A stretch of DNA of 64,000 bases, from the NCBI GenBank assembly GCA_964036045.1, contig OZ038379.1:68448001-68512000 (forward strand), written 5' to 3'. Shown here in pieces: positions 1 to 38,670 of the stretch (within the stretch, counting starts at the first letter, position 1; each line of letters starts with the position of its first letter). The position numbers and the translations under genes were made by a program. This stretch comes from Eutreptiella sp. 'Long Island Sound 2002'. Its lineage: Eukaryota > Protista > Euglenida. The notes under the pieces were generated by a model, which worked only from the letters and a program-made list of their open reading frames with translations, did no database searches and was not told the origin of the DNA.

Positions 1-269
1 GGTATTGACGGGCTAGAGCGTTACAGGGGCGGCCAGCGATGCCAGTTGGGCTACGGCGACACAAGCCGGTAAAGCAAGTTGAGCGGGGGGTTGAATTGGG
101 GTTGAGGTGTGGCTGTCGAAGCCTGCACAGAGCTACTCGGTGGCCGTGAGGGGCAGGGGGTGAGGTCCACGGGTGGCAGGGCCAAATCTTGCCGCAAGCA
201 TCCCCCTCCGACACCCCCTCCTATGAACATATGAAGGAGGGTGGTGTCGGCTAGTTTTCAAAATATTGT

Positions 270-370
270 TCCGGCGAAATTCTAGTAGCTTGTTCCGGCA
301 ACGTTCCGGCGGTGTTGCAGTGTCCGCTGAACCACTGCCGGAATGTGACCGGAGCAAGTCACCGGAACGT
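270..370. repeat. Cluster of self-complementary GTTCCGG/CCGGAAC motifs (CCGG variant of the transposon motif array)
   Basis: ttgttccggc..ttgttccggcaacgttccggc..ccggaatg..accggaacg. Same layout as the GTTCTAG/CTAGAAC clusters of the 7776-13207 element. Confidence 0.7.
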
Positions 371-474
371 CCCTATAAGGACGAAAATGAACAGCATGTT
401 CCACGCGCCCTTTGTGCGCAATGCGCACTATGGCCGGTTGGGGGGGGGGGGGGGTAACCAAGACAGGGCGCAGT

Positions 475-780
475 GCTCCTAGGGGTTTGGCTAACCCCCA
501 AAGGACCACAAAGCCGGGGGCACAACTCCTGGGGATTTGGCTTACCCCTTAAGGGACGTCAAAGCTGGGAGCACACTCGCCGGGGGTTGGGTAATCCTTG
601 AAGGGACAACATACGGGCCGGCACTGCCCCTTGGGGCCTAGCTAAGCACTTAGGGGGCAACAAAGATAGGGGCGCTGCCCTGGGGGTTTGACGAACCCCT
701 CAGGGGACAACGAAGCTTGGGGTAGCGCCCCAAGGAGTTTTCTTAACCCCTCAAGGAACCACGTAGCAGGGGGCACCGCC
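475..780. repeat. Degenerate ~50-bp tandem repeat, about 6 units
   Basis: Units of the form ggggtttggctaacccc..aaggg..aaagc.ggggg recur near 481, 531, 581, 631, 681 and 731. Confidence 0.7.
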
Positions 781-810
781 CCAATCTCGCACCGTGTGCG
801 CCCGCCTACC

Positions 811-1015
811 CCCTACGGCCTAGCTCGTAGCAAAGGCCACTCGCGGCGATGGTATGGCATGATGCACAAATGACCCACCTAGACCCTGGCCCCTACCGTG
901 TAGCCCATAGCAAAGGCCACTTGCGGCTATGGCATGCCATGATGCAAAAATGACCCGCCTAGCCCTTGGCCCCTACCCCTTAGCCCTATTCGGCCATGGC
1001 ATACCATGATGTACG
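811..1015. repeat. 80-bp tandem repeat, about 2.5 units
   Basis: ccctac..tagc..tagcaaaggccac..gcggc.atgg.atg.catgatgca.aaatgaccc at 811 and 891, with a partial copy at 971. Confidence 0.8.
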
Positions 1016-1194
1016 AGATGCACAGTCATTCACCGGCATTCACACACATTCACACACAACAAACTTCATTTTCGTGTCGCCTTCGACAGGGCAGTCACCT
1101 TGCCCCGCATATCGCCGTCGATGGGCACGGCCATGATGCGGAGCACAGGACAAAAGTGAGCTAATAAAGGGGGGTGCATAATGGGGTACGGACT

Positions 1195-1760
1195 CTAGGG
1201 AAGCCCTGGGAACACAAGGAACATGGTGAACAACATTGTTTTAGTGTAGAAAAGTCCATTGCAGCATTTGCCCCACGGTCTCGGCATGTGAGTCCACAAA
1301 GGCCTCGGGGCGTCCACAGGCACTTTGCCCGTTTTTTGCTGGCCCCCGCCCCAGGCAGTATGCACGTCAAAAGCCTGCTTTAGGAACCTGTTCAGGATCT
1401 CAACAATGTTGTTGGGGAATATTGCCATGCCGAAAGGCCATGTGTCCTCCGACAAGCGGTCAGCATCCTCCTCCAAAAAAAGGAGCTAGTGGGATGCAGA
1501 CACGGGGGGGTGGCCAGGCCGGGTCCTTGTATGCGAACCCCCCCAGCCCCCCCCCCCCACCCCCCCGGAGTTTTGAAAGATAGTGCTGCCGGGGCGGCCA
1601 CCAACAAGTGTTCCTAGATAAATCTCTCCGGCGCCAATTTTTTTCATACAATGTGTGTATACTCAAAATACTCAAAATTTTGTAGACAATCCATACTTTT
1701 TTAAAGCAACAAGAAAACTTTTGACCTGAATGAGGGCTATAGGCGCGCTGCACGCCTAAA
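1195..1760 (-). pseudogene. C-terminal fragment of a RAG1/Transib-like DDE transposase (relative of 7985-9950)
   Basis: EEDADRLSEDTWPFGMAIFPNNIVEILNRFLKQAFDVHTAWGGG aligns with EHDVDTILQNIKPFGLAMFSGDISESINRFLKHGRNEHSNRGGG near 9560-9690. Confidence 0.7.
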
Positions 1761-1765
1761 CAGCA

Positions 1766-1802
1766 ACCCTAGCCCTAACCCTAACCCTCTCTCTAACCCT
1801 AA
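1766..1802 (+). repeat. Interstitial telomere-like (CCCTAA)n
   Basis: aaccctagccctaaccctaaccctctctctaaccctaa. Confidence 0.75.
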
Positions 1803-1899
1803 TCAAGACCGAATGATGGGACCGAACTGGTGGGGGAGGGAACATTAGCTATGACTGGTGAGGGACATCAAGAATGATTCACACATTGATGGCTCCTGT

Positions 1900-2970
1900 G
1901 AAATCAGCTACCCCATCACCACGAGGCCCACTTTCAAGGCTTTTGGGACTTATGGGGGGCCAAAATGCCCCAAAATGGGGTCAAAATGGGCTCCTTTCAC
2001 CCGTTTGTGCACCCCAAATGGTCTAGGATGAGGTTTGGGAAAATGTGTTTTTGACCCATTTTTGACTCATTTTTGGTCCGAAAAAAGCCCATTTTCAAGG
2101 CATTTTGGGATTTTCAGAGGACCAAAATCGGCCAAGCTCAAAAGGGTCCAAAAACACTTGTTTTGGTGTCGCACATGGTCTAGGATCATTTTTTAGAAAA
2201 GTCATCTTTTTGCCCCTGCTGGACCCTGTGGACCCATTTGGGCACCCACCTGTTTGGGCTTGAGCTTGCGGCTTGCCGCAGCCCAGTGGGCCTAGGTATT
2301 GGGGTCTAGGCGTCCGTGTGGGCAATTTTGAGGGGTGGAAACCACAAAAAGTGGGGGGTTGCGGGTGGGGTAGGTGCCCTCGGAGTCTCATTTTGAGCCA
2401 TGTAGCCAAAGATATGGCCTATTCTTGGTTTGTGCCTGTCGGCATTTGGAGCCTCTGGGGAACTTTTTGGGCCGTTGCCGGGACATATCATGGAGTTAGT
2501 GGGCCGCAAACGGCTCGATGACCAGGGGAAGTCAAGCCGCACGTGAAGTGCAGCCACCGTTTCCCTTCGTTTGGCCGTTTGGAATATGTTCCGGGGCTGC
2601 TTTGCCCCCAAAATGGCTGTTTTTGGCCCTAAACTACAGTTTTTGAAACTGAGGTCCGCCACTTGCAAATCCCGTTTGCGGCCGCCAGCGTTGAGTTTCT
2701 CGCTCCAACTTTCTGTGATTGTACTTCACACCCACAGGTATCATCCACCAAAATTTCACTTGGATCTCAAACACCACAAATCAGTTCTGATTTTTGCCCA
2801 TTTCGCGCGAGCTGCTGCTTGCTTGCTGCTTGCTGCTGCTGGTGCTAAACCTGGTAGGTCGACCCTAGACGCTAAAAAGGGTTATAAAACCAAAACTCGT
2901 TCCACCAGCTCGGTGACCCTAACCCTTACCCTAACCCTAACCGCAACCGTACAACTAACCCTAACCCCCC
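1900..2970. repeat. Interspersed non-coding repeat rich in A/T tracts, ending in telomere-like repeats
   Basis: Recurring ccccaaaatgg, tttttgaccc and ttttggg tracts; ends in degenerate CCCTAA units at 2916-2966. Similar style at 25430-25590. Confidence 0.4.
2916..2966 (+). repeat. Interstitial telomere-like (CCCTAA)n, degenerate
   Basis: gaccctaacccttaccctaaccctaaccgcaaccgtacaactaaccctaaccc. Confidence 0.75.
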
Positions 2971-3798
2971 CTGCCTCCCTCACTCCTCGCTAGACGCCCC
3001 GCTTACCCACGGCCACACACGCCCCGACCCCCGGTAGGAACACCCCCCCCCCCGACCCCCGCGACGGTCGACCGTCCCCTATGCCAATACACGCCATTTT
3101 GCCTCCAACTTCTCAACCGCCCATTGAACCTCCCTTAGTGGGCACTTCCTGCCCAAAAGTTTTCGCTTGAAACGACCCCCCCCGGAACATCCCGAAGCTC
3201 CCGACAACGCGCGAACACTTCCTCAGATGCTCTGCATGTTTCCCGTCGCCTCCTTGACTAACGGCAACACCACACCCCAATATGCTACCCCCCCCCCCCC
3301 CCCCTTCAGTCCCTGTCGTCCTATGCGAGGGCACCATCAACACTGAGTGGATGGGCAAGACGTTGCGTACAACCATGGCAAACAAAGGTGCAACCTTCCC
3401 CTAAACAAATGAGATAGTGGGTCCTAACTCCCCTCCCCTAGACGCCTGCATCCTGAAATCGCCCCACCCAACCATCTACACTCTTCGGTGGTTGTTGATC
3501 CTTATACACAGCAAGGCCCAAAGCCACTGCTTGTGGCGCCCGGAGGATAGGGATGCACCGGGTGGGACCTTGGTGACGTGCGTGACGGGGTAAGGGAGCT
3601 CAACGTCCCTCCCAAATTATCAGTACCCCACCCATGCACCGAGTGGGGGGGGGGGGGATTTCTTACCGCCGCGGGGCAGATGGCGGGCAGCTGCCACTGG
3701 CAGCTCATTTTTTGACGTGGGCCTAACCATCGTCTAACGGGCGTGAAGCCCACGCCCGAAAAGGACGTTGTGGTCTTCCAGCCAAGTGGGTCAAGATC

Positions 3799-5260
3799 TT
3801 GAAGGAGGGGAACTACCCGGTCGAGGACGATGACAACTCCCACCGCCACGTCCCCGGCCAAACCCAGGTGCCCTCACGTGACGTGCGAGAAGGACACACA
3901 GCGCAACCACCTGAACGCATTGCAAGATGTCCTTGCGCAGAGAGAGAGGAAGCCGTCCGCACAGCTGCGGCACGCTTGGCTGCCCTAAAGGGAAACTTGG
4001 ACACGCAAGTGCGGGTATACCCCTTTCCGGCATGCCTTAGGGGGCCAATAGGGCCAGAAAAACCGTGTGGTGTTCTCCCCCACACTCTATTCAGATGATG
4101 TTGAAGCAGCTTGTTCCGGCGGTGTTCCAGTCTGTAGCACTCAAAAACCACCGGCACTTCGCCAGAACGTCGCCCGAAAAGCTTGTTGGAACGACGCCGC
4201 AACACATTTTCGTGGTGTCCTCTTTGTAGATGGAGGACATTTAGCTCAATCGTGACGACCCCCGAGCTGAGCACCTCATCATGCGGTGGCCGGGCTTCGA
4301 CCACGGGCCCATCTACGCCCTGGTACAAGAGTTGCAGCAGCATCCTATTGCAGCATTGGAGGTTTTGACAGCACTGCCCGACCATCTAGCCGGCCATAGT
4401 AGTGTCCTAGAGACGCAAATGGAGCGCTCAGGTAGCATTGACAACCTATCTCCGGCCCCCGCTCACCGCCAGCATTTGGTATCCACCGTCGCGAGTGCCG
4501 CCCCCTCGTCCCCTCCAGCCCTACTCCTAGTGCCAATACTTGCCCCCATGACCAGAACCAACCCCTCCCTTACCTCGAACTTGTCCGCTTGTTTTGCGGA
4601 CTGGCCCATGCGCCGCAAGTAGACACCCCAGCCCCCCAAAGAGAAGCCCGCCCTCCCCCCTCTAATACCCCAAGAAGTCCCCGAAGACTAGCCCACAAAC
4701 TGCCGCCTCGCCGCACCCAACCCCCAACTCCCCAGCAGCGGACATGCCGAGGGATATCCCCACACCTAAGCTCAAGCCCAAGGCGAAGGCAAGGGGGGTG
4801 TAAGTACAAGGCAGGGCAAAATGTTTATGTCATTTTTTGCGGGAAGGGGATGTGGGGGATCAAGAACGGCAAGGAGGCCCTGGCCGGGGATGGACCCCCC
4901 CGAAAAAGGGAAACGTGGGTGGGGTTCCTAGGGTATGAGGAAGTTTTTGGTGTGCCGAAAGCCCGCGTGTGGTGGACCTGAAGGCAAGCCAAGAAGCACG
5001 TGGGAAAGAAGAGGAAGGAGAAGAAGGCGGGCGAAGACAGGGAGGGTGACAAGGACGCCGAGGACACGGAGGCCGAGGATGGAAACGGGGATGGGGTGGG
5101 GATGGGGATGGGGGAGACAAAGGGGATGGGCAGGAGGCAGGTGACGGTGCCCCGGCGGCTAGCCGGGATGAGGGTAAGGGGGTGGGGGTTGCCGGGGTGT
5201 AGAGTGAAGGGGTGGTGGCTGACGGGGTGGTGGTCGACCAGAAAGAATGAGAGGTAAGTC
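3799..5260 (+). pseudogene. Decayed multi-exon gene of a relative of the RAG1-like element, with a Tudor-like segment at 4802-5002
   Basis: A GT(4015)..AG(4229) intron containing a CCGG motif array joins ORF 3799 to the frame of ORF 4281 (one in-frame TAG). KYKAGQNVYVIF..WVGFLGYEEVFGVPKARVWWT*RQAKKHV resembles FRVPGELLFRTREEAEAHL at 12341. Confidence 0.5.
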
Positions 5261-5376
5261 CCGGGGCGCCATGCACACCGGTGACAAGACAGGAGGAGTA
5301 GCCAAAGAAGGTACGAAGTGACTAACCCCATATGCCCTTGCCGGCACCCGAACTTACAATGTATGTTTCACTTACC

Positions 5377-6519
5377 CTTTATCCACACTTTGCTTTTTCT
5401 CTCGCCTGTGTGTTCTAGTGCTTACCCGTAGCTTGATCCGGCGGTGTTTTGGTGGTATTCCGGTAAAAACCGATTTGGAACGCAACTTTTTTTCGCACGA
5501 CAACATGTAAAACAACAAATCTGAAAATTCCAGCAGCACAACCTTCAGCTACCGAACAACAATCTTTCTTAGCATGTATGGGTGTGCTTGGTTCGGGCGG
5601 CTTGGATCCCATTGTGTGACCCGGCTTCGGATCTCCGTGGGAACCTCCCTTGCATCACACAGTGGAGATCGTACATACAGCAGATATGAAGTCTAAAACA
5701 AATGAGATGCGGCGCGTGGTTGAAACACCGGAGACAACCCTTTGCTTAGCAACGGGGGGGGGGGTAAGGGTGGGGGGCAAATGAAAAGGGGACCCACCCA
5801 CGTTTTGGCTAGAGGTAAAGCTCTATGCCTAGTCCTATGGGGGGGGGGGGGGTCAACCTCACGAGGTACCTACCCACAAAACTACCAAGACTGCGCAAGG
5901 GAATGTACACAAAGAAAAAATTTCCGGAAACAGGCCAACCTTTCATGCGGCTTAGTCCCATCAGGGGCGAGTGCCTCCACACCCTAGGTGACCGCAGCCC
6001 CATGGGCCGCGCTGCGGAAAGGCCAAGGGGTGCACCAACTGTTCTTGCCACTCCATCATCTCCTACAAGCGCACCCCTGCCAAGCGTCTGTAGACCACCG
6101 ACACGGAATGTGAGCGTAGGAGTGTCGAGGGCCCCCAACAAACTTTCCTTGGGTACCACAACGGTGTGCCAAAAGCTGCGGCATCACGTCAACTTATTTA
6201 GCTTTTGCGTGCTGTGCATACACAGGTTAGCGCAAAAACATGCCGTCGGCGTGGCCTCATGCCGTCTCCCCATCCCTTCGCCTTAGTGTACAGGGCACGA
6301 AAAGAGGACCCGCACCAAGGGCTCAAGTGTCATCGCAACTATGCCTACCGTGGCCCTCTTCTCAGGCCGCCGATCTTCTTCGGGGTGTCCGCGCTCTCCG
6401 TTGCCCCTTCTCCTATGGAAATGTCGCACTCCATGCCAACTTGGTGAAGTCCACAGCAAAGAGGCCGTGTGAGACTGCGGACCGTCCCAACGTGTAGCTA
6501 GCGCCTTCCCTACCTTGGT
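5377..6519. repeat. R1 ~1.25-kb tandem repeat unit, copy A (5'-truncated)
   Basis: ttatccacactttgc at 5379 and 6627 (period about 1248). Continuous similarity to 6520-7775 and 13208-15020. Confidence 0.9.
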
Positions 6520-7775
6520 GGAATCAGCACCCCGTGGCTGCGCGTGGACTTGCTGAGCGTTGAAAGCTGTGGCGACCCGGTATGCACTGACCTATTGCCT
6601 GCGGCCGCTGATCAACGCTTCCCGTTTATCCACACTTTGCTTTTTGTCTTGCCTGCATGTTCTAGTGCTTACCCGTAACTTGTTCCGGTGGTCTTTCGGT
6701 GGTGTTCCGGTAAAAACTGCTTTTGAACGCATCAATTTTTTCGCACGACGACGTGGAAAACGACGAACCTGAAAATTCCAGCAGCGCACCCTTCGGCTAG
6801 CAAACAACATACTTTCCCCGCATGCATGGGCGTGCTTGGTTGGGGCGGCTTGGATCTCCATTGTGTGAACCGGCTTTGGATCTCCATGGGAACCGGCTTT
6901 GCATCACACAGTGGAGATGGTACATACCACAGAGATATGAAGTCTCACACAAATGGGATGCGACGCCTGGTGGAAACATTGGGGACAGCCGTTTGCTTGG
7001 CAACCGGGGGGTGAGGGTTGGGGGGCAAATGAGAAGGGGACCCACCCACGCTTTGGCTAGAGGCAAAGCTTTGAGCCCAAGACTATGGGCGGGGGGGGGG
7101 GGGGTCGACCTCACGAGGTACCGACCAAAAAAAAACGACCACGACGGCATAAGGGAATGTACACAAAGAAAAATTTGCGGAAAGCGGGCAATCTTTCATG
7201 CGCCTCAGTCCCATCAGCGGCGAGTACCTCCACACCCTATGTAACCGCGCCCCCTTCGGCCGCGCTGCGGTAAGGCCAGGGGGTGCACCCACCGTTGTTG
7301 TGCCCTCAACACTCCTCCGCTCACATTGCGTGTCGGTGGTCTACAAACTGTGGGCAGGGATGCTCTTGTCGGAGATGATGGAGTACCCAACAGAGTTTCC
7401 TTGGGTACGGCAATGGTGTTCCAAAAGCTGCGAAATGCGGTTAACTTATTCAGGTTTTGCGCGCTGTGCACACACGGGTTGGCACAAAAACATGCCATCG
7501 GCGTGGCCTCATGCCGTCTCCCCATGCCTTCGCCTTAGTGTACATGGCACGAAAGGAGGCCCCGTGCCAAGGGCTCAAGTGTCATCGCAACTAGACCTAC
7601 CGTGGCCCTCTTCCGGGGCCGCCGATCTTCTTCGGGGCGTCCACGCACTCCGTGGCCCCTCCTCCTATGTAAACGTGGCACTCAACGCCAACTTGGTGAA
7701 TTCCACTGGAAAGAAGCCGTTTGAGACTGCGGACCTTCCTAACGTGTTGCTGGCGCCTTCCCTACCTTGGTGCAA
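6520..7775. repeat. R1 unit, copy B
   Basis: Head-to-tail with copy A. Ends ..ccttccctaccttggtgcaa at the left end of the transposon. Confidence 0.9.
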
Positions 7776-7984
7776 CCCTTGGTACACGCTAGAAGACCCA
7801 ATCTCGTTCTAGCCTAGAACACTCTAGCCTAGATGTTCTAGCCTAGATTAGATCAATACTAGAACGATATAATGTTTACCTAGGTGTGCCAATTTCTTCA
7901 TTGTTGCGCCGTGCATGCTTCCTATTGTCCGTAGTGCATTGTTCCATGGTTCCTTCTTTCCCCCTTAGATATTACACATTTCTT

Positions 7985-9950
7985 TGCAATGAAACGCCCC
8001 GCATGTCCCCCCTTGCTCCCTCCTCAACCGGGAAGGATACTTCCCTCTTGTCTAAGGCACTACGGGAGTTGAGTGGGGCATCTACCCTCAAGGATGAGCG
8101 GGTGGGCCATTACTTGGCCTGGGCGGTATCATGCACCCTAGCACGGCGGCATTTCAACAACGCCGTCCAATATGTGAACTCCGCCACTTCTACCCATACC
8201 ACGGGTGAGGCATGCAAGGCCGCCGTTGAGGCATACACCGCCTCCCTTCTCCCCCCACCGCCATGTGTGAACTAGTGATCAACACGAGGGCCCCCAAGTC
8301 CTCGTGGTGGACCCTCTCGGAGCTCTACACGCTTCGTAAGTTGGAGTATCACTGCACCGTCCCTAGTGGCCCCTACTCCCGTCCAATTTGTACCGTGCGG
8401 GCTTTCCAAGCCCGTTGGAAGGAGTTGGTCGCCCCGGTGCAATTGGATGACCCCGTTGCCACGGTGTTGCCCAAGGCCACCGGGATCTCATGGCCCTTCG
8501 CCTCATGGGTCACGTACATTCTCTCCCGGTCGGGCTTGGTGCGGTCAATCAACCGCAACTTCCTGTTGACGTTCATCGTCCGGGGAGATGCCTAGCCCGT
8601 GACCGGGGGCAATTGGACCCAACTTACCATCTCCTTGGCCAACTCCGACCGCTTGGCCCGCTACCCGGCGGGGCTTTGGGTGTTGAGCATGGCCAATTGC
8701 GATCACAAGGCCATGGACACCCTTGGGACGTTGTGGAAGAGCAATTGGGAGGTGCCTTTCGCTCGTTCTAGTTTTGATCTAGTTGGCCTGGAACGCCGCT
8801 CGCTAGACGCTAGATTGGACTACACTAGAACGAACTTAACCATCCCCCATGTCTCGTGTTGGGGTGATTCAAGATATCATCGACACGGGGCTGGTCCAAT
8901 GGGGGGCCTCCAAGGAGGAGGCAAAGGTGATCCTCGGGGGGGGTCAACCGTGGACGCGAAGGGTGATCGGGGTTGCCACATGCCCCCAAGTGGGCTCCAT
9001 GTTCAATGAGGGGATATGGAATGCCCAAACGAAGACTTGGGAGGGTAGTGCTATCCCGCGGACCATTGAGGGTGATGAGGCCAACTACACGGCCTTCCTC
9101 CTTGGGAAGCCTTCCTTGCAAGCCGCCGGCTGCAGTACGCCGCGCATTTTGTAATTGCCACGTGCCTGGGTGGTCTTGTGCATTTTGCACTTGACAATGG
9201 CCATGGGACGCTTGTTGGGGGAGTTTGTCAACCGGGAGGCTAGGTCGGTCACCCCTGCGCTCCGTCAAGACCTGCAAGTTCTCCTGTCGGAGGGGCGTGC
9301 AGGTTGGAGTGTTTATGGGTCAGCTTCCCCGGACGGGGAAGAGACTGCCATTTTTTTTGACGCATGGCCGCATATTGCTAAGTTCCTCGGCAATAGGCCG
9401 AGCTCGGCCAAGTACAAGGCCATCACGAACATGCTGGACCTGCTGCAGGCCCTCTATGGTACATATGACGGCCCTAACCCATTGAATCGTGCTGCCGTGG
9501 CCAGCGATTTCCGGCGCCACTGTACTGTCGGAATAGCATCATGGTATCTATTGAGCCTTGAGCATGATGTAGATACCATCTTGCAAAACATTAAGCCATT
9601 TGGGCTAGCTATGTTCTCGGGTGACATTTCGGAAAGCATCAACCGCTTTCTGAAACATGGTCGCAACGAGCACAGCAACCGGGGGGGGGGGGGGGCTGTC
9701 GGGTGGAGGGGGTGGACAGGGTGTCGGGTCGTCAGTGGTCGGCCATCCACAGGGAGGCCAACAATGCATGACATGGTTCTGCATACTTTGACGTGTCGTG
9801 GGTTGTGCATGGGGGGCCGCGGTCACAAGTGCCAAGCTCGGGTAGGGATGCCATGGAGGTAAGGAGGGGCGAGGGCCACATGCAGGCTTCCCTGAACCAG
9901 ACTATGGAGCAACAAAATGGCATTGAAAGAGTTGATGGACGAGGTGCTAC
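7985..9950 (+). pseudogene. RAG1-core/Transib-like DDE transposase, with stops and frameshifts
   Basis: FIVRGDA (D at 8587); VILGG[G]QPWTRRVIG (~8930-8965, probable D>G) or CDHK (8701) as second D; VVLCILHLTMAMGR (C/DxxH); FGLAMFSGDISESINRFLK (E at 9632). Order and spacing are like RAG1 D600/D708/E962. Confidence 0.7.
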
Positions 9951-9955
9951 GCCAG

Positions 9956-10104
9956 GTATATTGTCTTGCTGTGCGTTCTAGCGTCGATCTAAGGAATAGT
10001 TCTGGTCTTGATCTAGGCAGCACGATCGGTCGCTGCACTGTCGCTAGAACGCCACTAGAACGGTTGCCTAGAACGCCGCCAGAACGCTCCTGTGTCTGCT
10101 ACAG
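9956..10104 (+). other. Predicted GT-AG intron filled with CTAG motif array
   Basis: cag|GTATAT..CTGCTACAG|aat. Removal joins LKELMDEVLRQ in frame to NAATQALIAQVLEAHKQ (ORF 10135). Confidence 0.75.
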
Positions 10105-12835
10105 AATGCGGCGACCCAGGCGCTGATTGCGCAGGTGCTGGAGGCGCACAAGCAGGCACAGCAGGCGCCGGCCGAGGAGGCCGAGCCAAAGGCCCAGCAG
10201 GCCCCGAAGGGCAAGCCACCCCCCCTCGCCAAGCCCAAGGCCAAGCCTGAGCCCCAACCCCAAGCCCCACATCCACCATCGCCACCCCCTCGCCCCGTTG
10301 GTCGCCACGAAGTTGGCGGCGACGGTCCCCGCGTAGCACCCGGAAGTGGAGGAGGTGCGGGGGGGAGCTCAAAGGGCTCTCGGCTTCCCTCGCAGCCTCC
10401 AAGGGGGCCAAGGCCAGGGCTGAGGCCAAGGTCTCCGAATGGGAGACCAAATTGGCCGCCCTCTGGGCGGGGGGGGGCTGCAGATAGGATCCGCATGGCG
10501 GAGGACACCCTCCGCAAGGCGAAAGGGACGGTTGCGTAGAAGGAGGAGGCGATCGAGGCGCTCGATCGCGGGGTGCGGTGGATGGAGAGAGAGTTGGCGG
10601 TGGTGGTGGAGAGGGTGAAGGAGGAGGAGGTGGACGAGGCGGTGGAGGTGGACGTGGAGGCGGAGGAGATGGAGGAGGGGATCGTGAAGGAGGAGGTAGA
10701 GGCGAAGGTGGTGGTGGAGACACCGGCGAGGGGGGGGGGGGGGGGGCAGTGGCTCAAGGGGATGATGGGGTCGAGGAATGCGGGGGCCCTCCAGGACCTG
10801 CCATGGGACCCGCCTGTCCTGGCTGGCCCCCACCCCCCAAACCTGGACACCCCCCTCCTCGTCGCCCCAGAGAGTCCAGGTTGGACTCTCCGGTTTTGTT
10901 GCAACGGGTGCACCATCGGCTGTTGGGGGCGGGGCGGTGTGTATGGGTGGACGAGGGGGGGGTTGTCCACCTGGACAGGCCCCTGCGCCTAGGGGTGATC
11001 AACGGCTGGTGGGGGTGGCAACGTGAGTTGCCGGGGCCGAGGAAGGGATGGGGGGAGGTCCCCCCCCCCCCCCCGAAATGGGGCCGAAGATGTTCGAGTT
11101 GGCGCAAACCAACATCTTCACCCCCGAGAGGAAAAAGGGGGGGGGCCACCCACGCCAACTGCTAGCGGGGGCTGGGCTTGGGGGGGGGGAGAGGGTTGAG
11201 TATGCGGGGAAGGCCTGGAGCTGGACGCCAACCTGGTCGGCGCTCATGGACTTCGGGGGTTTCAACCCCGAGGCGGCGAACCGGGGGGCGTACGCCGGGG
11301 CGGTGCACGGCATCGCCTCCCGGCCCAACTCCAAGCCCAAGCCCGCCGCAACCCCCGCTGGGGCCCCCACGCAGCCGCACCCCCCCAACCCCCGGGACGC
11401 CTTCGCCAAGGCCCTAGAGCCATCTTTCCCGCCCTGGACCGCCAAGGCACGGTATGTTGATTGCGTTGTAGCGTTGATCTAGCGAACCGTTCTAGTCTTG
11501 ATCCAGCCACCGCCGTGCCGCCGCCGCTAGAACGTCCCTAGAACGCCGCAAAAACAGTTGCCTAGAACGCCGCTAGAACGCATCTGCATCATGTTTCTGT
11601 CTTCAGCCTGTCAGCGTGTAGACGTGTGGAGCCGACCCCCGTTGGGGTGCGCGTGGAGTGGCGCGATGGCGGAGGGCGAACGCGCCTCGTGGGGGTCACC
11701 AAGTTGGGCGAGATGATGGGGACGGACCCCAATCTGGCTTCTCGGTGTTGGAGGCTTTGGGTAGATGGGGATCGGGGAGGAGTGCAGGGGCCATGGACCC
11801 GCAGCGCAAGGGTTGGGTGAGGTTGCAGGACGGGACGGGGGAGACCAGCAGCAGCAGCAGCATCAGCAGCAGCAGTAGCAGCACCACCACCACCACCGGG
11901 AAGAAGACCCCCCCCCCCCAGTCTCCGAAACCCTCGCCCAAGGCCCCCAAGAAAAAACCCCGCCGCTTCGAGAGTAGCGAAGAAGAGCCCCCCCCCCCCC
12001 CCCCCTAAGCCCAGCAGAGCAAGCCCAAGGCCAAGGCCAAGCCCCAAGCCAAGGCCAAGGGCAACGCCCCCCCCCCCCCAACCCCAAGCCCCTCCCTTGC
12101 AAGATAGGGGTCGGGACCCCTATGGGAATGTGCCGGGTGTGGGGGACACCCGGTATGTCCCTTGGAGGGAGGGGGGCAATGGGGGGGACCGTCAGCCAAG
12201 TGACGGTGTTGGGGGATTGGGATGAGGAGTTGGACCCGGGGGAGTGGTTGGTGGTGTCGCAGGGGTCCAATGGGGAGAGGGAGGGGGGGAAGAAGGGGAA
12301 GAAGGGGAAGGAGAGAAGGCGGGAGAAAGAGGGGGGCACCTTCCGGGTGCCGGGAGAGCTTCTCTTCCGCACCAGGGAGGAGGCGGAGGCCCACCTCCGG
12401 GAGGCCTTGGGGGCGGGGACGAGGGGGACGAAGGGGATGACGGGGATGACGAAGGGGATGAGGGTGGTGACAAGGGGGGTGAGGTGGGGGGTGACAAGGG
12501 GGGGGATAAGGACGGGGACACGGGGGGTGAGAAGGGGGGTGCCGGGAGCAAGGATGAGCCCCGGCAACCCCGAAGGAGGGGTAACCTGCATGTCGCGACT
12601 CGCGAATGGGGGCCTGGGGGGGGGCAGGGAGGCTAATGGGGCTAACCGGGCGAATCGGGCTAACCCACCACCAAGTGACCCGGCGCCGGCCCGCCAAGTG
12701 ACCTTCCAAGTGACCTGTGGGGTGCGGTGGGGGGCTAACCGGGCTAACCCGGGGGTGGGGGGGGGGGGAACCCGGCGCTCCGTGAGTGGGGTCCAGCATC
12801 GGGACCTTATGATTGGCCACGGCTGGCCATGGTAG
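10105..12835 (+). pseudogene. Low-complexity 3' exons of the transposon gene(s), including a putative Tudor/SH3-like segment (12185-12397)
   Basis: Lys/Pro/Glu-rich exons linked by the predicted introns. GTVSQVTVLGDWDEELDPGEWLVVSQG..GTFRVPGELLFRTREEAEAHL. Confidence 0.45.
11452..11606 (+). other. Predicted GT-AG intron filled with CTAG motif array
   Basis: acg|GTATGT..GTCTTCAG|cct. Removal joins ORF 11048 (..WTAKAR) in frame to LSACRRVEPTPVG (ORF 11626). Confidence 0.75.
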
Positions 12836-13207
12836 CCAGGGCGGCTTCTCTTTGAGGAGTGGCGGAGCATTCATATATATTGTTCTAGCAGGGTTCTAGC
12901 GAACCGTTCTAGCGGCGTTCTAGCAACGCTCGCTAGAACGTCGCTAGAACGCCGCTAGAACGAAAAAATTTTGGACTCCAAAATCAGGTGAAAATAGTGA
13001 AATTGTGAAAAAAAAAAAAGGTATGGGCCCCCGAGTATGGATAGGGGGGTCCGAAAAAAGTATGGGCCCCGAGTATGGATAGGGGGGTCCAGGTTAGACA
13101 CCTCACCCCCCCCCTGCGGGGGGGGTATCCCCCTCTCTTTTTCGTTCTGGCCGCTCTAGCCGGTTCTAGGCTAGAACGAGATTGGGTATTCTAGCGTGTA
13201 CCGGGGG

Positions 13208-15110
13208 AACCGGCAGCCTGTGGCTGCGCTTGGACTTGCTGAGCGTTGAAAGCTGTGGCGATCCAGTATGCTCTGGCCTATTGCTGGCCGCCGATCAAAG
13301 CTTCCCGTTTATCCACACTTTGCTTTTTGTCTCGCCTACGTGTTCTAAACCCCCCCCCACTTATTACCCCCCCCCCGGGGGTAGTAGCAGTGCGGATTGG
13401 TTGAGGGTGCCGGGGGGTGGGTTATAAGTGGGGGGGGGGGGGTAGAAGTCCCTTGGTGGCATGGATGCAACCACATTTGCATCTTCAGACGTCATTCATC
13501 TTTTTGTAATGGAAATTGATTTGCACCGATCTGTGGGAGACCCTAGTGGTGCTGCAGCTCCTGATGATTGCTCAACTTGGGCATGTAAGAACCCAAATCT
13601 TAAGCTCACGTCTGATGGTAGCCACATTGATTTGACAGAACTGCCTGGTTATCAATATGACGCCAATGATGCATTGATTTGGTTCCGGCCAAAGCATGCT
13701 CTTGAGTGTGTGAATGCCAATGAGCAGCGCCCTGCAAAGAAATAGGCACAAGTCTCATTGATGCAGCTCTGGAAGAAGTAACCGATTCCTGATTATTGGC
13801 AATCCATCCGCTGGCACTTCTCGTTCTTGCTTGTGTGCTGACAAAGGGGGGTTATAAGTCCCTGGGTGGCACGGATCTCCTAGGGGGGGGGTGTTATTAG
13901 TGGGGGGGTATCATAAGTGGGGGGGGGGATAAGTGTGGGGGGGGGTGGGGGTTAGTGCTTACCCGTAACTTGTTCCGGCGGTCTTTCGGTGGTGTTCCGG
14001 GTAAAACTTTTTGTGAACGCAACTATTTTTTCACACGACAACATGGAAAACAACAAAATCTGAAAATTCTAGCAGCGCACCCTTCGGCTAGCGAACAACA
14101 TACTTTCCTAGCATGTATGGGCGTGCTTGGTTAGGGCGGCTTGGATCTCCATTGTGTGAACGGGCTTTGGATCTCCATGGGAACCGGCCTTGCATCACAC
14201 AGTGGAGATCGTACATGCAACAAAGATATGAAATCTCACACCAATGAGATGCGACGCGTGGTTGAAAAATTGGAGACAACCCTTTGCTTAGGAAAGGGGG
14301 GGGGGTAAGGGTGGAGGGGCAAATGATCAGGGGGCCCACCCATGTTTTGGCTAGTGACAAAGCTCTCAGCCTACTCCTATGGGGGGGGAGATTCAACCTC
14401 ACGAGGTACCTACCCACAAAACCACCAAGACTTCATACGGGAATGTACACAAAGAAAAGTTTCCGGAAACCGGGCAACCTTTCATGCGGCTGAGTCCCAT
14501 CAGCGGCGAGTACCTCCAAACACTATGTAACTGCAGCCCCATCGTCCGCGCTGCGGGAAGGCCAAGGGGTGCACCCACCGTTCTTACCACTCCACCATCT
14601 CCTACAAGCGCACCCCTGCCCGCATAGGGGTGTTGAGGGCCCCCAACAGACGTTCCTTACGTACCACAACGGTGTTCCAAAAGCTGCGGAATCCGGTCAA
14701 CTTATTTAGGTTTTGCGCGCTGTGCATACACGGGTTAGCAAAAAACATGCCGTCGGCGTGGCCTCATGCCGTCTCCCCATGCCTTCGCCTTAGTGTACAC
14801 GGCACGAAAGGAGGACCCGTGCCAAGGGCTCAAGTGTCATCGCAACTAGACCTACCGTGGCCCTCTTGCGGGGCCTCCGATCTTCTTCGGGCGTCCACGC
14901 TCTCCGCAGCCGCTTCTCCTATGTAAACGTCGCACTCCACGCCAACTTGGTCAATCCCAGACCAAGGAGGCCGTTTGAGACTGTGGACCATACCAACGTG
15001 TAGCTGGCGCCTTCCCTACCTTGGTGGAAGCGGCACCCCGGAGCGTTCAAACATGTGGCGATCCGGTATGCAATGGCCTATTGCCTGAAGCTGCCCATCA
15101 ACGCTTCCCT
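13208..15110. repeat. R1 unit, copy C (interrupted by a MITE) plus stub of the next unit
   Basis: Same sequence as 6520-7775. The next unit begins after ccttccctaccttggtgg at ~15020. Confidence 0.9.
13348..13952. mobile_element. ~605-bp MITE-like insertion with G/C-run TIRs
   Basis: Absent from R1 copies A and B (gttctagtgctt). Here gttcTA[aaccccccccacttatta..ataagtg..gggggt]TAgtgctt. TA duplication, with one extra A on the left. Confidence 0.8.
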
Positions 15111-36916: not shown

Positions 36917-38670
36917 AAGATCCAAGCCGGGTCACACAACGGGGATCCAAGCTAGTTCACACAATGGAGATCCAAGCCGGTTCACACAATGGGGATCCAA
37001 AGGCGGTTCCGGTAATGGAGATCCAAGCCGGTTCACACAATGGAGATCCAAGCTGGTTCACACAATGGACATCCGAAGACAGCTCACACAATGGAGATCC
37101 ACGCCCCTGCACACAATGGAGGTTCAAACCGGTTCACACAATGGAGATCCAAGCTGGTTCACACAATGGACATCCGAAGACGATTCACACAATGGAGATC
37201 CACGCCCGTTCACACAATGGAGGTTCAAACCGGTTCACACAATGGAGATCCAAGCCGTGGAGATCGGACGCCGGCTCACATAATGGAGGTTCCAGCCGGT
37301 TCACACAATGGAGGTTCAAGCCGGTCCACACAATGGAGATCCGAGACGGTTCACACAATGGAGATCCAAGCAGGTTCACACAATGGAGATCCGAGGACGG
37401 TTCACGTAATGGAGATCCAAGCCGGTTCACGCAACGGACATCCGAAAACAGTTCACACAATGGAGATCCACGCCCGTTCACACAATGGAGGTTCAAACCA
37501 GTTCACACAATGGAGATCCAAGCCGTGGAGATCGGACGCCGGCTCACATAATGGAGGTTCCAGCCGGTTCACACAATGGAGGTTCAAGCCGGTCCACACA
37601 ATGGAGATCCAAAGCCGGTTCACACAATGGAGATCCAAGCAGGTTCACACAATGGAGATCCGAGACGGTTCACACAATGGAGATCCAAGCAGGTTCACAC
37701 AATGGAGATCCGAGGACGGTTCACGTAATGGAGATCCAAGCCGGTTCACGCAACGGACATCCGAAAACAGCTCACACAATGGAGATCCACGCCCGTTCAC
37801 ACAATGGAGGTTCAAACCAGTTCACACAATGGAGATCCAAGCCGTGGAGATCGGACGCCGGCTCACATAATGGAGGTTCCAGCCGGTTCACACAATGGAG
37901 GTTCAAGCCGGTCCACACAATGGAGATCCAAAGCCGGTTCACACAATGGAGATCCAAGCAGGTTCACACAATGGAGATCCGAGACGGTTCACACAATGGA
38001 GATCCAAGCATGTTCACACAATGGAGATCCGAGGACGGTTCACGTAATGGAGATCCAAGCCGGTTCACGCAACGGACATCCGAAAACAGCTCACACAATG
38101 GAGATCCACGCCCGTTCACACAATGGAGGTTCAAACCAGTTCACACAATGGAGATCCAAGCCGTGGAGATCGGACGCCGGCTCACATGATGGAGGTTCCA
38201 GCCGGTTCACACAATGGAGGTTCAAGCCGGTCCACACAATGGAGATCCAAAGCCGGTTCACACAATGGAGATCCAAGCAGGTTCACACAATGGAGATCCG
38301 AGACGGTTCACACAATGGAGATCCAAGCATGTTCACACAATGGAGATCCGAGGACGGTTCACGTAATGGAGATCCAAGCCGGTTCACGCAACGGACATCC
38401 GAAAATAGTTCACACAATGGAGATCCACGCCCGTTCACACAATGGAGGTTCAAACCAGTTCACACAATGGAGATCCAAGCCGTGGAGATCGGACGCCGGC
38501 TCACATAATGGAGGTTCCAGCCGGTTCACACAATGGAGGTTCAAGCCGGTCCACACAATGGAGATCCAAAGCCGGTTCACACAATAGAGATCCAAGCAGG
38601 TTCACACAATGAAGATCCGAGACGGTTCACACAATGGAGATCCAAGCCAGTTCACACAATGGAAATCCAA
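36917..38670. repeat. 25-bp satellite (GCCGGTTCACACAATGGAGATCCAA) with 319-bp higher-order repeat
   Basis: gttcacac at 37031 and 37056. Identical ORF starts recur at 37453/37772/38091/38410 and 37485/37804/38123. Confidence 0.95.

Follow-up and report, generated by a model that had tools for sequence, protein, structure and literature searches.

Hairpin arrays of one short word at the ends and in the predicted introns of a RAG1-fold transposon of Eutreptiella

Results

Arrays of one word at the ends and inside the introns

The stretch of DNA analysed here, which we call the window, comprises 64,000 nt of Eutreptiella sp. 'Long Island Sound 2002' (contig OZ038379.1, positions 68,448,001 to 68,512,000) and contains at 7776-13207 a full-length, dead copy (5,432 nt) of a high-copy, two-gene cut-and-paste transposon. 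The element carries copies of a short word, GTTCTAG, arranged in a module, an imperfect hairpin of 70-120 bp in which 2-4 forward sites resembling CGTTCTAGCG are followed by 3-5 reverse sites. Complete or shortened, this module was found beside both terminal inverted repeats (TIRs) and after gene 2, and it makes up the body of each of the three GT-AG introns that could be recognised. The reading that we favour, with a probability of roughly 0.55, is that these modules would be lineage-specific protein-binding arrays, housed in introns as the only non-coding space inside the genes.

The 64-kb window contains GTTCTAG 27 times; 4.07 copies were expected, and shuffled sequences reached at most 9. 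All 24 exact GTTCTAG/CTAGAAC sites of the element fall inside array-bearing intervals that together measure 690 nt (7776-7870, 8752-8863, 9956-10104, 11452-11606, 12870-12970 and 13130-13207), and none was found in its remaining 4,742 nt or in any of its exons. A preliminary description of this DNA, made by a model from the letters and their open reading frames (ORFs), had reported a TIR with dense arrays of the word at both ends and in three internal blocks, and the counts bear this out. With its flanks a site reads CGTTCTAGCG, about 10 nt. In each block the forward copies come before the reverse copies, which gives the imperfect hairpin, and the four hairpin blocks are homologous beyond the 7-mer itself. 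At the ends the arrangement is that of a subterminal array, with one short word present in many copies and in both orientations inside both ends. The array-bearing features are as follows.

7805 to 7865, forward strand: left subterminal array with 4 exact sites (7806, 7814, 7835 and 7859), the first CGTTCTAGC site lying 30 nt from the terminus.
8752 to 8863, forward strand: predicted intron 1, a hairpin array; in the window copy the acceptor is mutated and 16 nt following the donor are deleted; fold z-score −2.8.
9956 to 10104, forward strand: predicted intron 2, a GT-AG hairpin array of 149 nt; copy consensus of 4 forward and 5 reverse sites.
11452 to 11606, forward strand: predicted intron 3, a GT-AG hairpin array of 155 nt, paralogue of intron 2.
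12880 to 12962, forward strand: 3' hairpin module after gene 2 with 4 forward and 3 reverse sites, nearly perfect; fold z-score −8.6.
13144 to 13177, reverse strand: right subterminal array with the first site 30 nt from the terminus; 2 exact sites and 3 with one mismatch.

Folded as RNA, a check that the preliminary description had suggested for the introns, the three internal blocks scored better than shuffles, with z-scores of −2.1, −2.7 and −2.8. The 5' arms of the hairpins alternate GTTCTAG with GATCTAG, which mispairs with CTAGAAC; none of the three introns is without this pattern, and most copies preserve it. A constraint on the sequence fits it better than a constraint on the stem.

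Three conventional introns, predicted from frame and from conserved borders

The three intronic blocks are predicted to be conventional GT-AG introns. At each of introns 2 and 3 the reading continues in frame 1 after having been open in frame 2, and in both the AG is preceded by a pyrimidine-rich stretch. Both had already been proposed at these positions, as GT-AG introns whose removal restores the reading frame, and they stand as described. For intron 1 the earlier proposal was a span of 8752-8850 with a damaged acceptor. The damage is real, since the window copy has GGG at 8861-8863 where the other copies have TAG (public reads give T at 8861). The end of the intron is to be placed at 8863, on the evidence of the borders in the other copies, which read GAG/GTAG or CAG/GTAC at the donor and TTTAG/GTGATT at the acceptor (the slash marks the border). 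Intron 1 is of phase 0 and joins ...SNWE to VIQDIID... in the translated product. The related protein P0031 (36% identical) is colinear over this junction and has no gap there (LWQHNLSAIQAIID vs LWKSNWE/VIQDIID); P0144, which also covers the position, has a gap of 21 residues there and is not informative on the junction.

For comparison within the family we used the copies at loci L002, L001 and L011, whose identity to the window copy is about 72-86%. These copies have preserved the donor and the acceptor of each of the three introns, so that the alignment of copies proposed earlier as a check on splice-site conservation had a positive outcome. GT..AG borders and pyrimidine-rich 3' ends were seen in nearly all copies, the sole exception being the mutated intron 1 acceptor of the window copy. 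The copy at L002 (8573-13978) is a second full-length element, about 86% identical and flanked by AT at the places of the target-site duplication (TSD). A segment of it at 12430-12645, homologous to window 11644-11858, is inverted.

At L011 the stretch 761-3690 is a 2.9-kb non-autonomous derivative which has been mobilised, has no coding capacity and retains both ends, its own 2-bp TSD (CT) and three modules, two of which lie at the centres of long GT-rich/CA-rich palindromes. Since this derivative is non-coding and still keeps three modules, modules travel in DNA that has no introns at all. The same foldback-like build was seen at L001 7357-9100.

Paralogous introns and the origin of the modules

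Introns 2 and 3, which occupy non-homologous positions, align over their whole length, including the nucleotides beside both splice sites, and their blocks are 81% identical. Sequence-related introns at non-homologous positions are what introners show. The full-length alignment means that one of the two introns came from the other or that both came from a common module. In one related lineage, L004, an array-bearing non-coding stretch that is probably an intron ends with TTTTAG at about residue 88 of the L003 reference protein, a position where the other lineages have none; L004 is without intron 1. The paralogy of introns 2 and 3, together with this stretch at an unshared position, suggests that duplication of the module probably made at least some of the introns.

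The preliminary description had put forward, as an alternative to binding arrays, an origin of the introns from mini-elements of the same family. The paralogous introns and the L004 stretch agree with this introner-like origin, within the element. The borders of modules and introns showed neither repeated flanks nor a target duplication of their own, and the modules do not contain the outer part of the TIR. Arrays outside transposons were not found in the window or at loci L001, L002 and L011, and the remaining ~58 kb of the window held no solo modules.

The same codon with a different word in related lineages

Related elements whose transposases are 36-47% identical were compared. One codon, that of residue 239 in the L003 reference, immediately precedes intron 1 in the window family as well as in L003, L008, L009, L010, L012 and L014, and the intron has GT..AG borders wherever the borders could be read. 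The word in its array is GTTCTAG in the window family, GTTCAAA in L003, TTTCTAG in L008, CTTATAA in L009, GTTATAG in L010, GTCAAA in L012 and GTTCCGG/GTTCCAG in L014; the word of L004 is GTTCTAC. Every lineage has a word private to it, which occurs in non-coding parts only. In L003 the 5' subterminal region contains 5 sites, intron 1 contains 3 and intron 2 another 5, and the exons have none; in L010 the three arrays contain 5, 10 and 9 sites, and the exons again have none. The first site of L003 lies 28 nt from its likely terminus, against 30 nt at both ends of the window family. That the ends and the introns share a word is based on the window family and L003, as the termini of L010 and L013 were not fixed confidently. 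The modules of other lineages, 10 of 10 tested, fold as hairpins better than shuffles, with z-scores of −2.5 to −11.4.

The position of intron 1 is thus old, and its content has been replaced in step with the other non-coding DNA of the element. It is not credible that mini-elements were inserted independently at this codon in each of seven lineages. A changed word at an unchanged codon points to selection for a shared word, to persistent conversion among the arrays, or to both.

Several observations concern the surroundings of these related elements. Telomere-like CCCTAA repeats stand directly before the likely left terminus of L003 (45-67). At L013, a 2.2-kb element occupies positions 12748-14947; its inverted repeat measures 43 nt (98% complementary), it has GTTCCAGCG hairpin arrays in its interior, and it is nested in or lies beside a RAG1-fold element. 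At L014, an ORF of 456 residues with a piggyBac-type transposase domain (PF13843) at 6495-7865 adjoins the RAG1-fold element.

The window itself contains pieces of the GTTCCGG/GTTCCAG-word lineage, since 3542-5593 and 5-1494 are homologous to L013/L014. The piece at 5-1494 (reverse strand) is a fragment of an L013/L014-type RAG1-fold transposase. A relative at 3799-5260 with the CCGG version of the word had been noted before, and its lineage is confirmed by this homology. The candidate intron at 4015-4229 is decayed, and a tblastx comparison of 3500-5320 with the window element returned no real homology, so that the relation is seen only through L013/L014. The two features of interest in these pieces are given below.

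255 to 372, reverse strand: well-formed GTTCCGG/CCGGAAC hairpin array in a related-element fragment; fold z-score −5.7.
4015 to 4229, forward strand: decayed candidate intron in a GTTCCRG-type relative (3542-4211 is homologous to L013); fold z-score −0.87, no better than shuffles.

Genes and the predicted transposase fold

The element has two genes on the forward strand. The exons of the window copy are as follows.

7886 to 8751, forward strand: transposase exon A, dead, with a frameshift near 8250 and a stop at 8593; located by tblastn with the L003 exon.
8864 to 9860, forward strand: transposase exon B, RAG1-fold catalytic core with CILH and ESINRFLK motifs.
9917 to 9955, forward strand: gene 2 exon 1, MALKELMDEVLRQ; a homologous short first exon is present in L003 and L001.
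10105 to 11451, forward strand: gene 2 exon 2, rich in proline, lysine and glutamate, coiled-coil-like, with several frameshifts.
11607 to 11820, forward strand: gene 2 exon 3, downstream extent uncertain; the L010 homologue follows the third array of the L010 element.

By its predicted structure the transposase is a protein of RAG1 fold. An AlphaFold model of P0031 (434 residues, 23 sequences) had a mean predicted local distance difference test (pLDDT) score of 75 and a predicted template modelling (pTM) score of 0.78. A Foldseek search of the PDB with this model gave RAG1, RAG-like or Transib proteins as all of the top 47 matches, the best with an E-value of 5.4e-9 and a template modelling (TM) score of 0.52. 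A protein language-model (atlas) search gave a feature score of 0.94 to RAG1 clusters. The ORF at 9155-9862 has 232 relatives among 1.8 billion proteins, and all those examined are unannotated ORF calls from assemblies. The search among relatives for annotated, spliced protein models likewise returned only unannotated ORF calls (45 of 45 matches).

Gene 2, which starts at 9917 with its very short first exon, holds introns 2 and 3 and encodes a product that is mostly of low complexity. The atlas search with the C-terminal half of gene 2 gave no credible relative.

Termini, copy number and insertion site

The termini of the window element read CCCTTGGTACACGC. The TIRs and the TSD are as follows.

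7774 to 7775, no strand: left TSD copy AA, 2 bp; both flanks align to an uninterrupted neighbouring repeat unit reading ...GGTGGAATCAG...
7776 to 7827, forward strand: left TIR, 52 nt, starting with CCC; 88% complementary to the right arm.
13156 to 13207, reverse strand: right TIR, ending with GGG; pairs with the left arm over 52 nt at 88%.
13208 to 13209, no strand: right TSD copy AA, 2 bp, by flank alignment to the uninterrupted repeat unit.

More than 10,000 contigs from each of 3 public runs map to the stretch, and over 250 public contigs have a loose end beginning at 7775/7776. With so many contigs per run, and hundreds of them diverging exactly at this point, the family must be very abundant and the terminus at 7776 real. 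The reading frames of the window copy are broken by several frameshifts and stop codons, and many of these fall at long stretches of G or C. Such stretches, 12-18 letters long, coincide with frame changes at 9681-9695, 10729-10746, 11062-11076 and 11984-12002, and some of these changes may be long-read assembly errors instead of mutations. Near the right end, at 13015-13067, there is a tandem duplication of ~38-52 bp which is absent from L002; both forms occur in public contigs.

The host site is one unit of a tandem repeat with a unit length of ~1.15-1.25 kb. The repeat spans 5371-7775 and 13208-15109 of the window, and its units are 82-83% alike. One part of the unit, 6618-6845, has its homologue at L014 10869-11096 and contains fragments of a GTTCCGG-type array; on this ground the tandem repeat itself seems to derive from a related transposon. 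Further along, at 37000-38600, a satellite with a period of 319 bp contains GTTCAAA and GTTCCAG, each recurring every 319 nt, and it shares a block of 55-60 bp with the 1.2-kb repeat unit (6846-6905).

Discussion

Possible functions of the arrays

The word differs between lineages, is common to the non-coding parts of an element and is absent from exons, and the non-coding derivative keeps its modules. In these respects the arrays have the behaviour of a lineage-specific cis signal under selection. In the mechanism that we propose, each module would be a lineage-specific cluster of sites for a protein encoded by the element, either the N-terminal part of the transposase or its partner protein. 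Bound to these sites, the protein would recognise the DNA of its own element, pair or compact it, or regulate it. Within the coding part only introns could hold such sites, and some introns at least would have arisen by duplication of a module plus splice signals. The suggestion made at the outset, that the introns carry transposase-binding arrays, is thereby retained as far as the shared, lineage-specific signal is concerned; that a protein binds it, which protein this would be and what binding would do are inferred, with the change of word between lineages as indirect support for the binding.

A more far-reaching version, which we offer tentatively and hold to be somewhat doubtful, treats the word as a lineage-private DNA 'barcode'. 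The barcode would co-evolve with the DNA-binding part of the element's own proteins and would be spread by introns that are themselves made of it, duplication of a module creating an intron. By means of the arrays a transposase would then distinguish copies of its own lineage from the many sister copies that crowd the genome, and the 5-kb element would be folded so that its ends meet.

Several points weigh against the binding-array interpretation. Conversion from end arrays that are under selection could hold the intron arrays similar even if no selection acted on the latter. The conservation of the motif columns, 85.9% identical among the four family copies against 76.2% for other intron columns, speaks for the arrays, in a comparison that is mildly circular and that draws on few related copies in non-independent pairs. 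A Pfam search with 15 distinct pieces gave nothing above the curated thresholds and identified no DNA-binding domain. The N-terminal transposase exon was modelled to look for a domain like the nonamer-binding one, and the model (pLDDT 56, pTM 0.36) was too poor for a structure search. Some introns of the relatives lack such an array: later introns of L009 (2990-3050 and 3440-3490) share a different repeated block, TTGATTTGGGT...GAGAC.TGGGTCC, and are paralogous introns of another kind that do not carry the intron 1 word. Helical phasing was dropped as general evidence, as the spacing is 11-13-11 nt here and 8-16 nt in L003 and L010. Finally, the splicing of introns 1-3 is a prediction, and the public runs that were mapped look like DNA. 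The 3 runs that hold the stretch have more than 10,000 contigs each and flanks diverging at 7776, and among the joints listed from them 0 of the 3 predicted splice junctions were found; a run labelled as RNA had next to nothing on the stretch.

Alternatively, the modules could be selfish or neutral passengers of no use to the element, either introner-like hairpin mini-units or copies of the subterminal hairpins spread by repair and gene conversion and tolerated only where they are spliced out. The full-length paralogy of introns 2 and 3 would be expected from such passengers, as would the absence of intron 1 from L004 together with an array-bearing stretch, probably an intron, elsewhere. The position of modules at the centres of long palindromes in the L011 derivative and in L001 would also follow if hairpins promote rearrangement, and a MITE-like origin (from miniature inverted-repeat transposable elements) has been proposed for euglenid introns (PMC11282704, PMC12501133). 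Passengers do not readily account for the codon of intron 1, which stayed fixed across lineages that are 37-47% identical while the word changed with the rest of the element; this combination needs selection or very persistent conversion. Moreover, modules bear neither outer TIR sequence nor a target duplication of their own, and none stands alone in the ~58 kb around the element. We consider passengers an unlikely explanation. A role at the RNA level, which we judge to be quite unlikely too, would have pre-mRNA hairpins juxtapose the splice sites, or give rise to mirtron-like or hairpin-derived small RNAs directed against the ends of the same element, by which the element would limit itself or the host would silence it. 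RNA interference does work in Euglena. Every module folds as a hairpin (z-scores of −2.1 to −11.4), the stems of introns 2 and 3 begin and end ~10-25 nt from the splice sites, and both arms changed together between lineages so that pairing was kept. However, the same modules occur outside introns, namely next to the TIRs, downstream of the stop codon and in the non-coding derivative, and a stem alone does not need a word common to all introns and ends of one element. The intronic stems of the window family are also only weakly better than shuffles (z-scores of −2.1 to −2.8) and conserve the GATCTAG/CTAGAAC mispairs.

The preliminary description had also seen a likeness to the structured introns of euglenids, and this we abandon. 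Nonconventional or intermediate euglenid introns are removed via pairing of the intron ends, and both their end-pairing structure (PMC6221363, PMC11282704) and the euglenid host speak for the idea. Nonconventional introns have no GT-AG borders, and in them CAG at +4 to +6 pairs with CTG at −8 to −6 (PMC11282704, PMC12501133). The blocks have GT-AG borders in the window copy, L001, L002 and L011, on which grounds the nonconventional type was rejected. In intron 2 the CAG/CTG rule can be satisfied only with shifted borders, giving 154 nt and a frame that is not restored, and intron 3 lacks a CAG in its 5' part. We leave this explanation a very small probability.

If the arrays do bind protein, they would supply a reason for a mobile element to keep introns, namely cis signals that cannot be written in coding sequence, and would represent the creation of introns by an element's own regulatory module. 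If the barcode idea also holds, the element would possess a self-recognition system, and intron gain would be driven by a transposon's own cis signal. The findings bear on how related transposon lineages stay separate in one genome, by means of private words that change with the element, and on how long elements bring their ends together. They also bear on the source of new euglenid introns, which have long been suspected to be transposon-derived. The RAG1 fold combined with a fixed distance from word to end may show the use of a second, spacer-separated recognition site by RAG-like enzymes. If gene conversion instead produced the arrays as neutral by-products, what is left is a feature of repeat structure that is odd but can be explained.

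Comparison with known systems

The arrays of the window element resemble the subterminal arrays of the plant DNA transposons En/Spm and Ac/Ds, in which a short word also occurs in many copies and in both orientations inside the ends. The sites are 12-bp TnpA sites in En/Spm and AAACGG hexamers in Ac/Ds; a protein encoded by the element binds them and helps to join the ends. En/Spm has two gene products, as does the window element. Unlike in the plant elements, the arrays described here are also found deep inside, every ~1-1.5 kb, as hairpin-shaped intron bodies, and their binding of a protein is something that we infer. Plant subterminal repeat arrays are described in PMC1636448 and PMC5499845.

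Introners are transposon-derived introns of Micromonas, Aureococcus and dinoflagellates (PMC9860276, PMC12130899, PMC7789003). They share with the introns of the window element the inverted repeats, the sequence relation to one another and splice sites that are carried along or co-opted. Introners spread through unrelated host genes, whereas the modules lie in the transposon's own genes and share the word of its ends. The modules differ further in keeping their position across old lineages and in having no recognisable target duplication.

With Transib and RAG1-like elements the window element shares the RAG1 core fold predicted for its transposase. The presence of the word ~30 nt from the cleaved terminus recalls the heptamer-spacer-nonamer layout of RAG and Transib, which we treat only as a lead. 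The differences are considerable: those elements have a 5-bp TSD, against 2 bp here (AA in the window, AT in L002 and CT in the L011 derivative), and Transib termini are CACGGTG-like heptamers, against CCC termini here. The window element also differs in having two genes with introns and in lacking a Pfam match. In the CACTA/Mirage/Chapaev group the TSD measures 2-4 bp, and a 2-bp TSD would fit Mirage; no Pfam family matches any piece of the element, so that the placement is uncertain.

Extra transposase sites away from the ends also govern complex assembly in phage Mu, through its internal activation sequence, and in Sleeping Beauty, through its inverted repeat/direct repeat (IR/DR) structure and half-site enhancer (PMC5224488). 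The sites in Mu and Sleeping Beauty are single or lie within the inverted repeats, whereas the window element has hairpin arrays along its length, in introns. Foldback-like elements, such as FB and Galileo of Drosophila, have ends and an interior composed of short-repeat arrays that form long palindromes. The 2.9-kb L011 derivative resembles them; the arrays of FB and Galileo are the inverted repeats themselves and not introns.

The preliminary description knew of no account of this architecture, and for the literature searched this holds: subterminal binding arrays, internal enhancers and introners have been described, and their combination was not found. New here are the kept splice sites, the paralogy of introns 2 and 3, an intron at the same codon with lineage-specific words, the confinement of these words to non-coding parts, and a derivative that has kept its modules.

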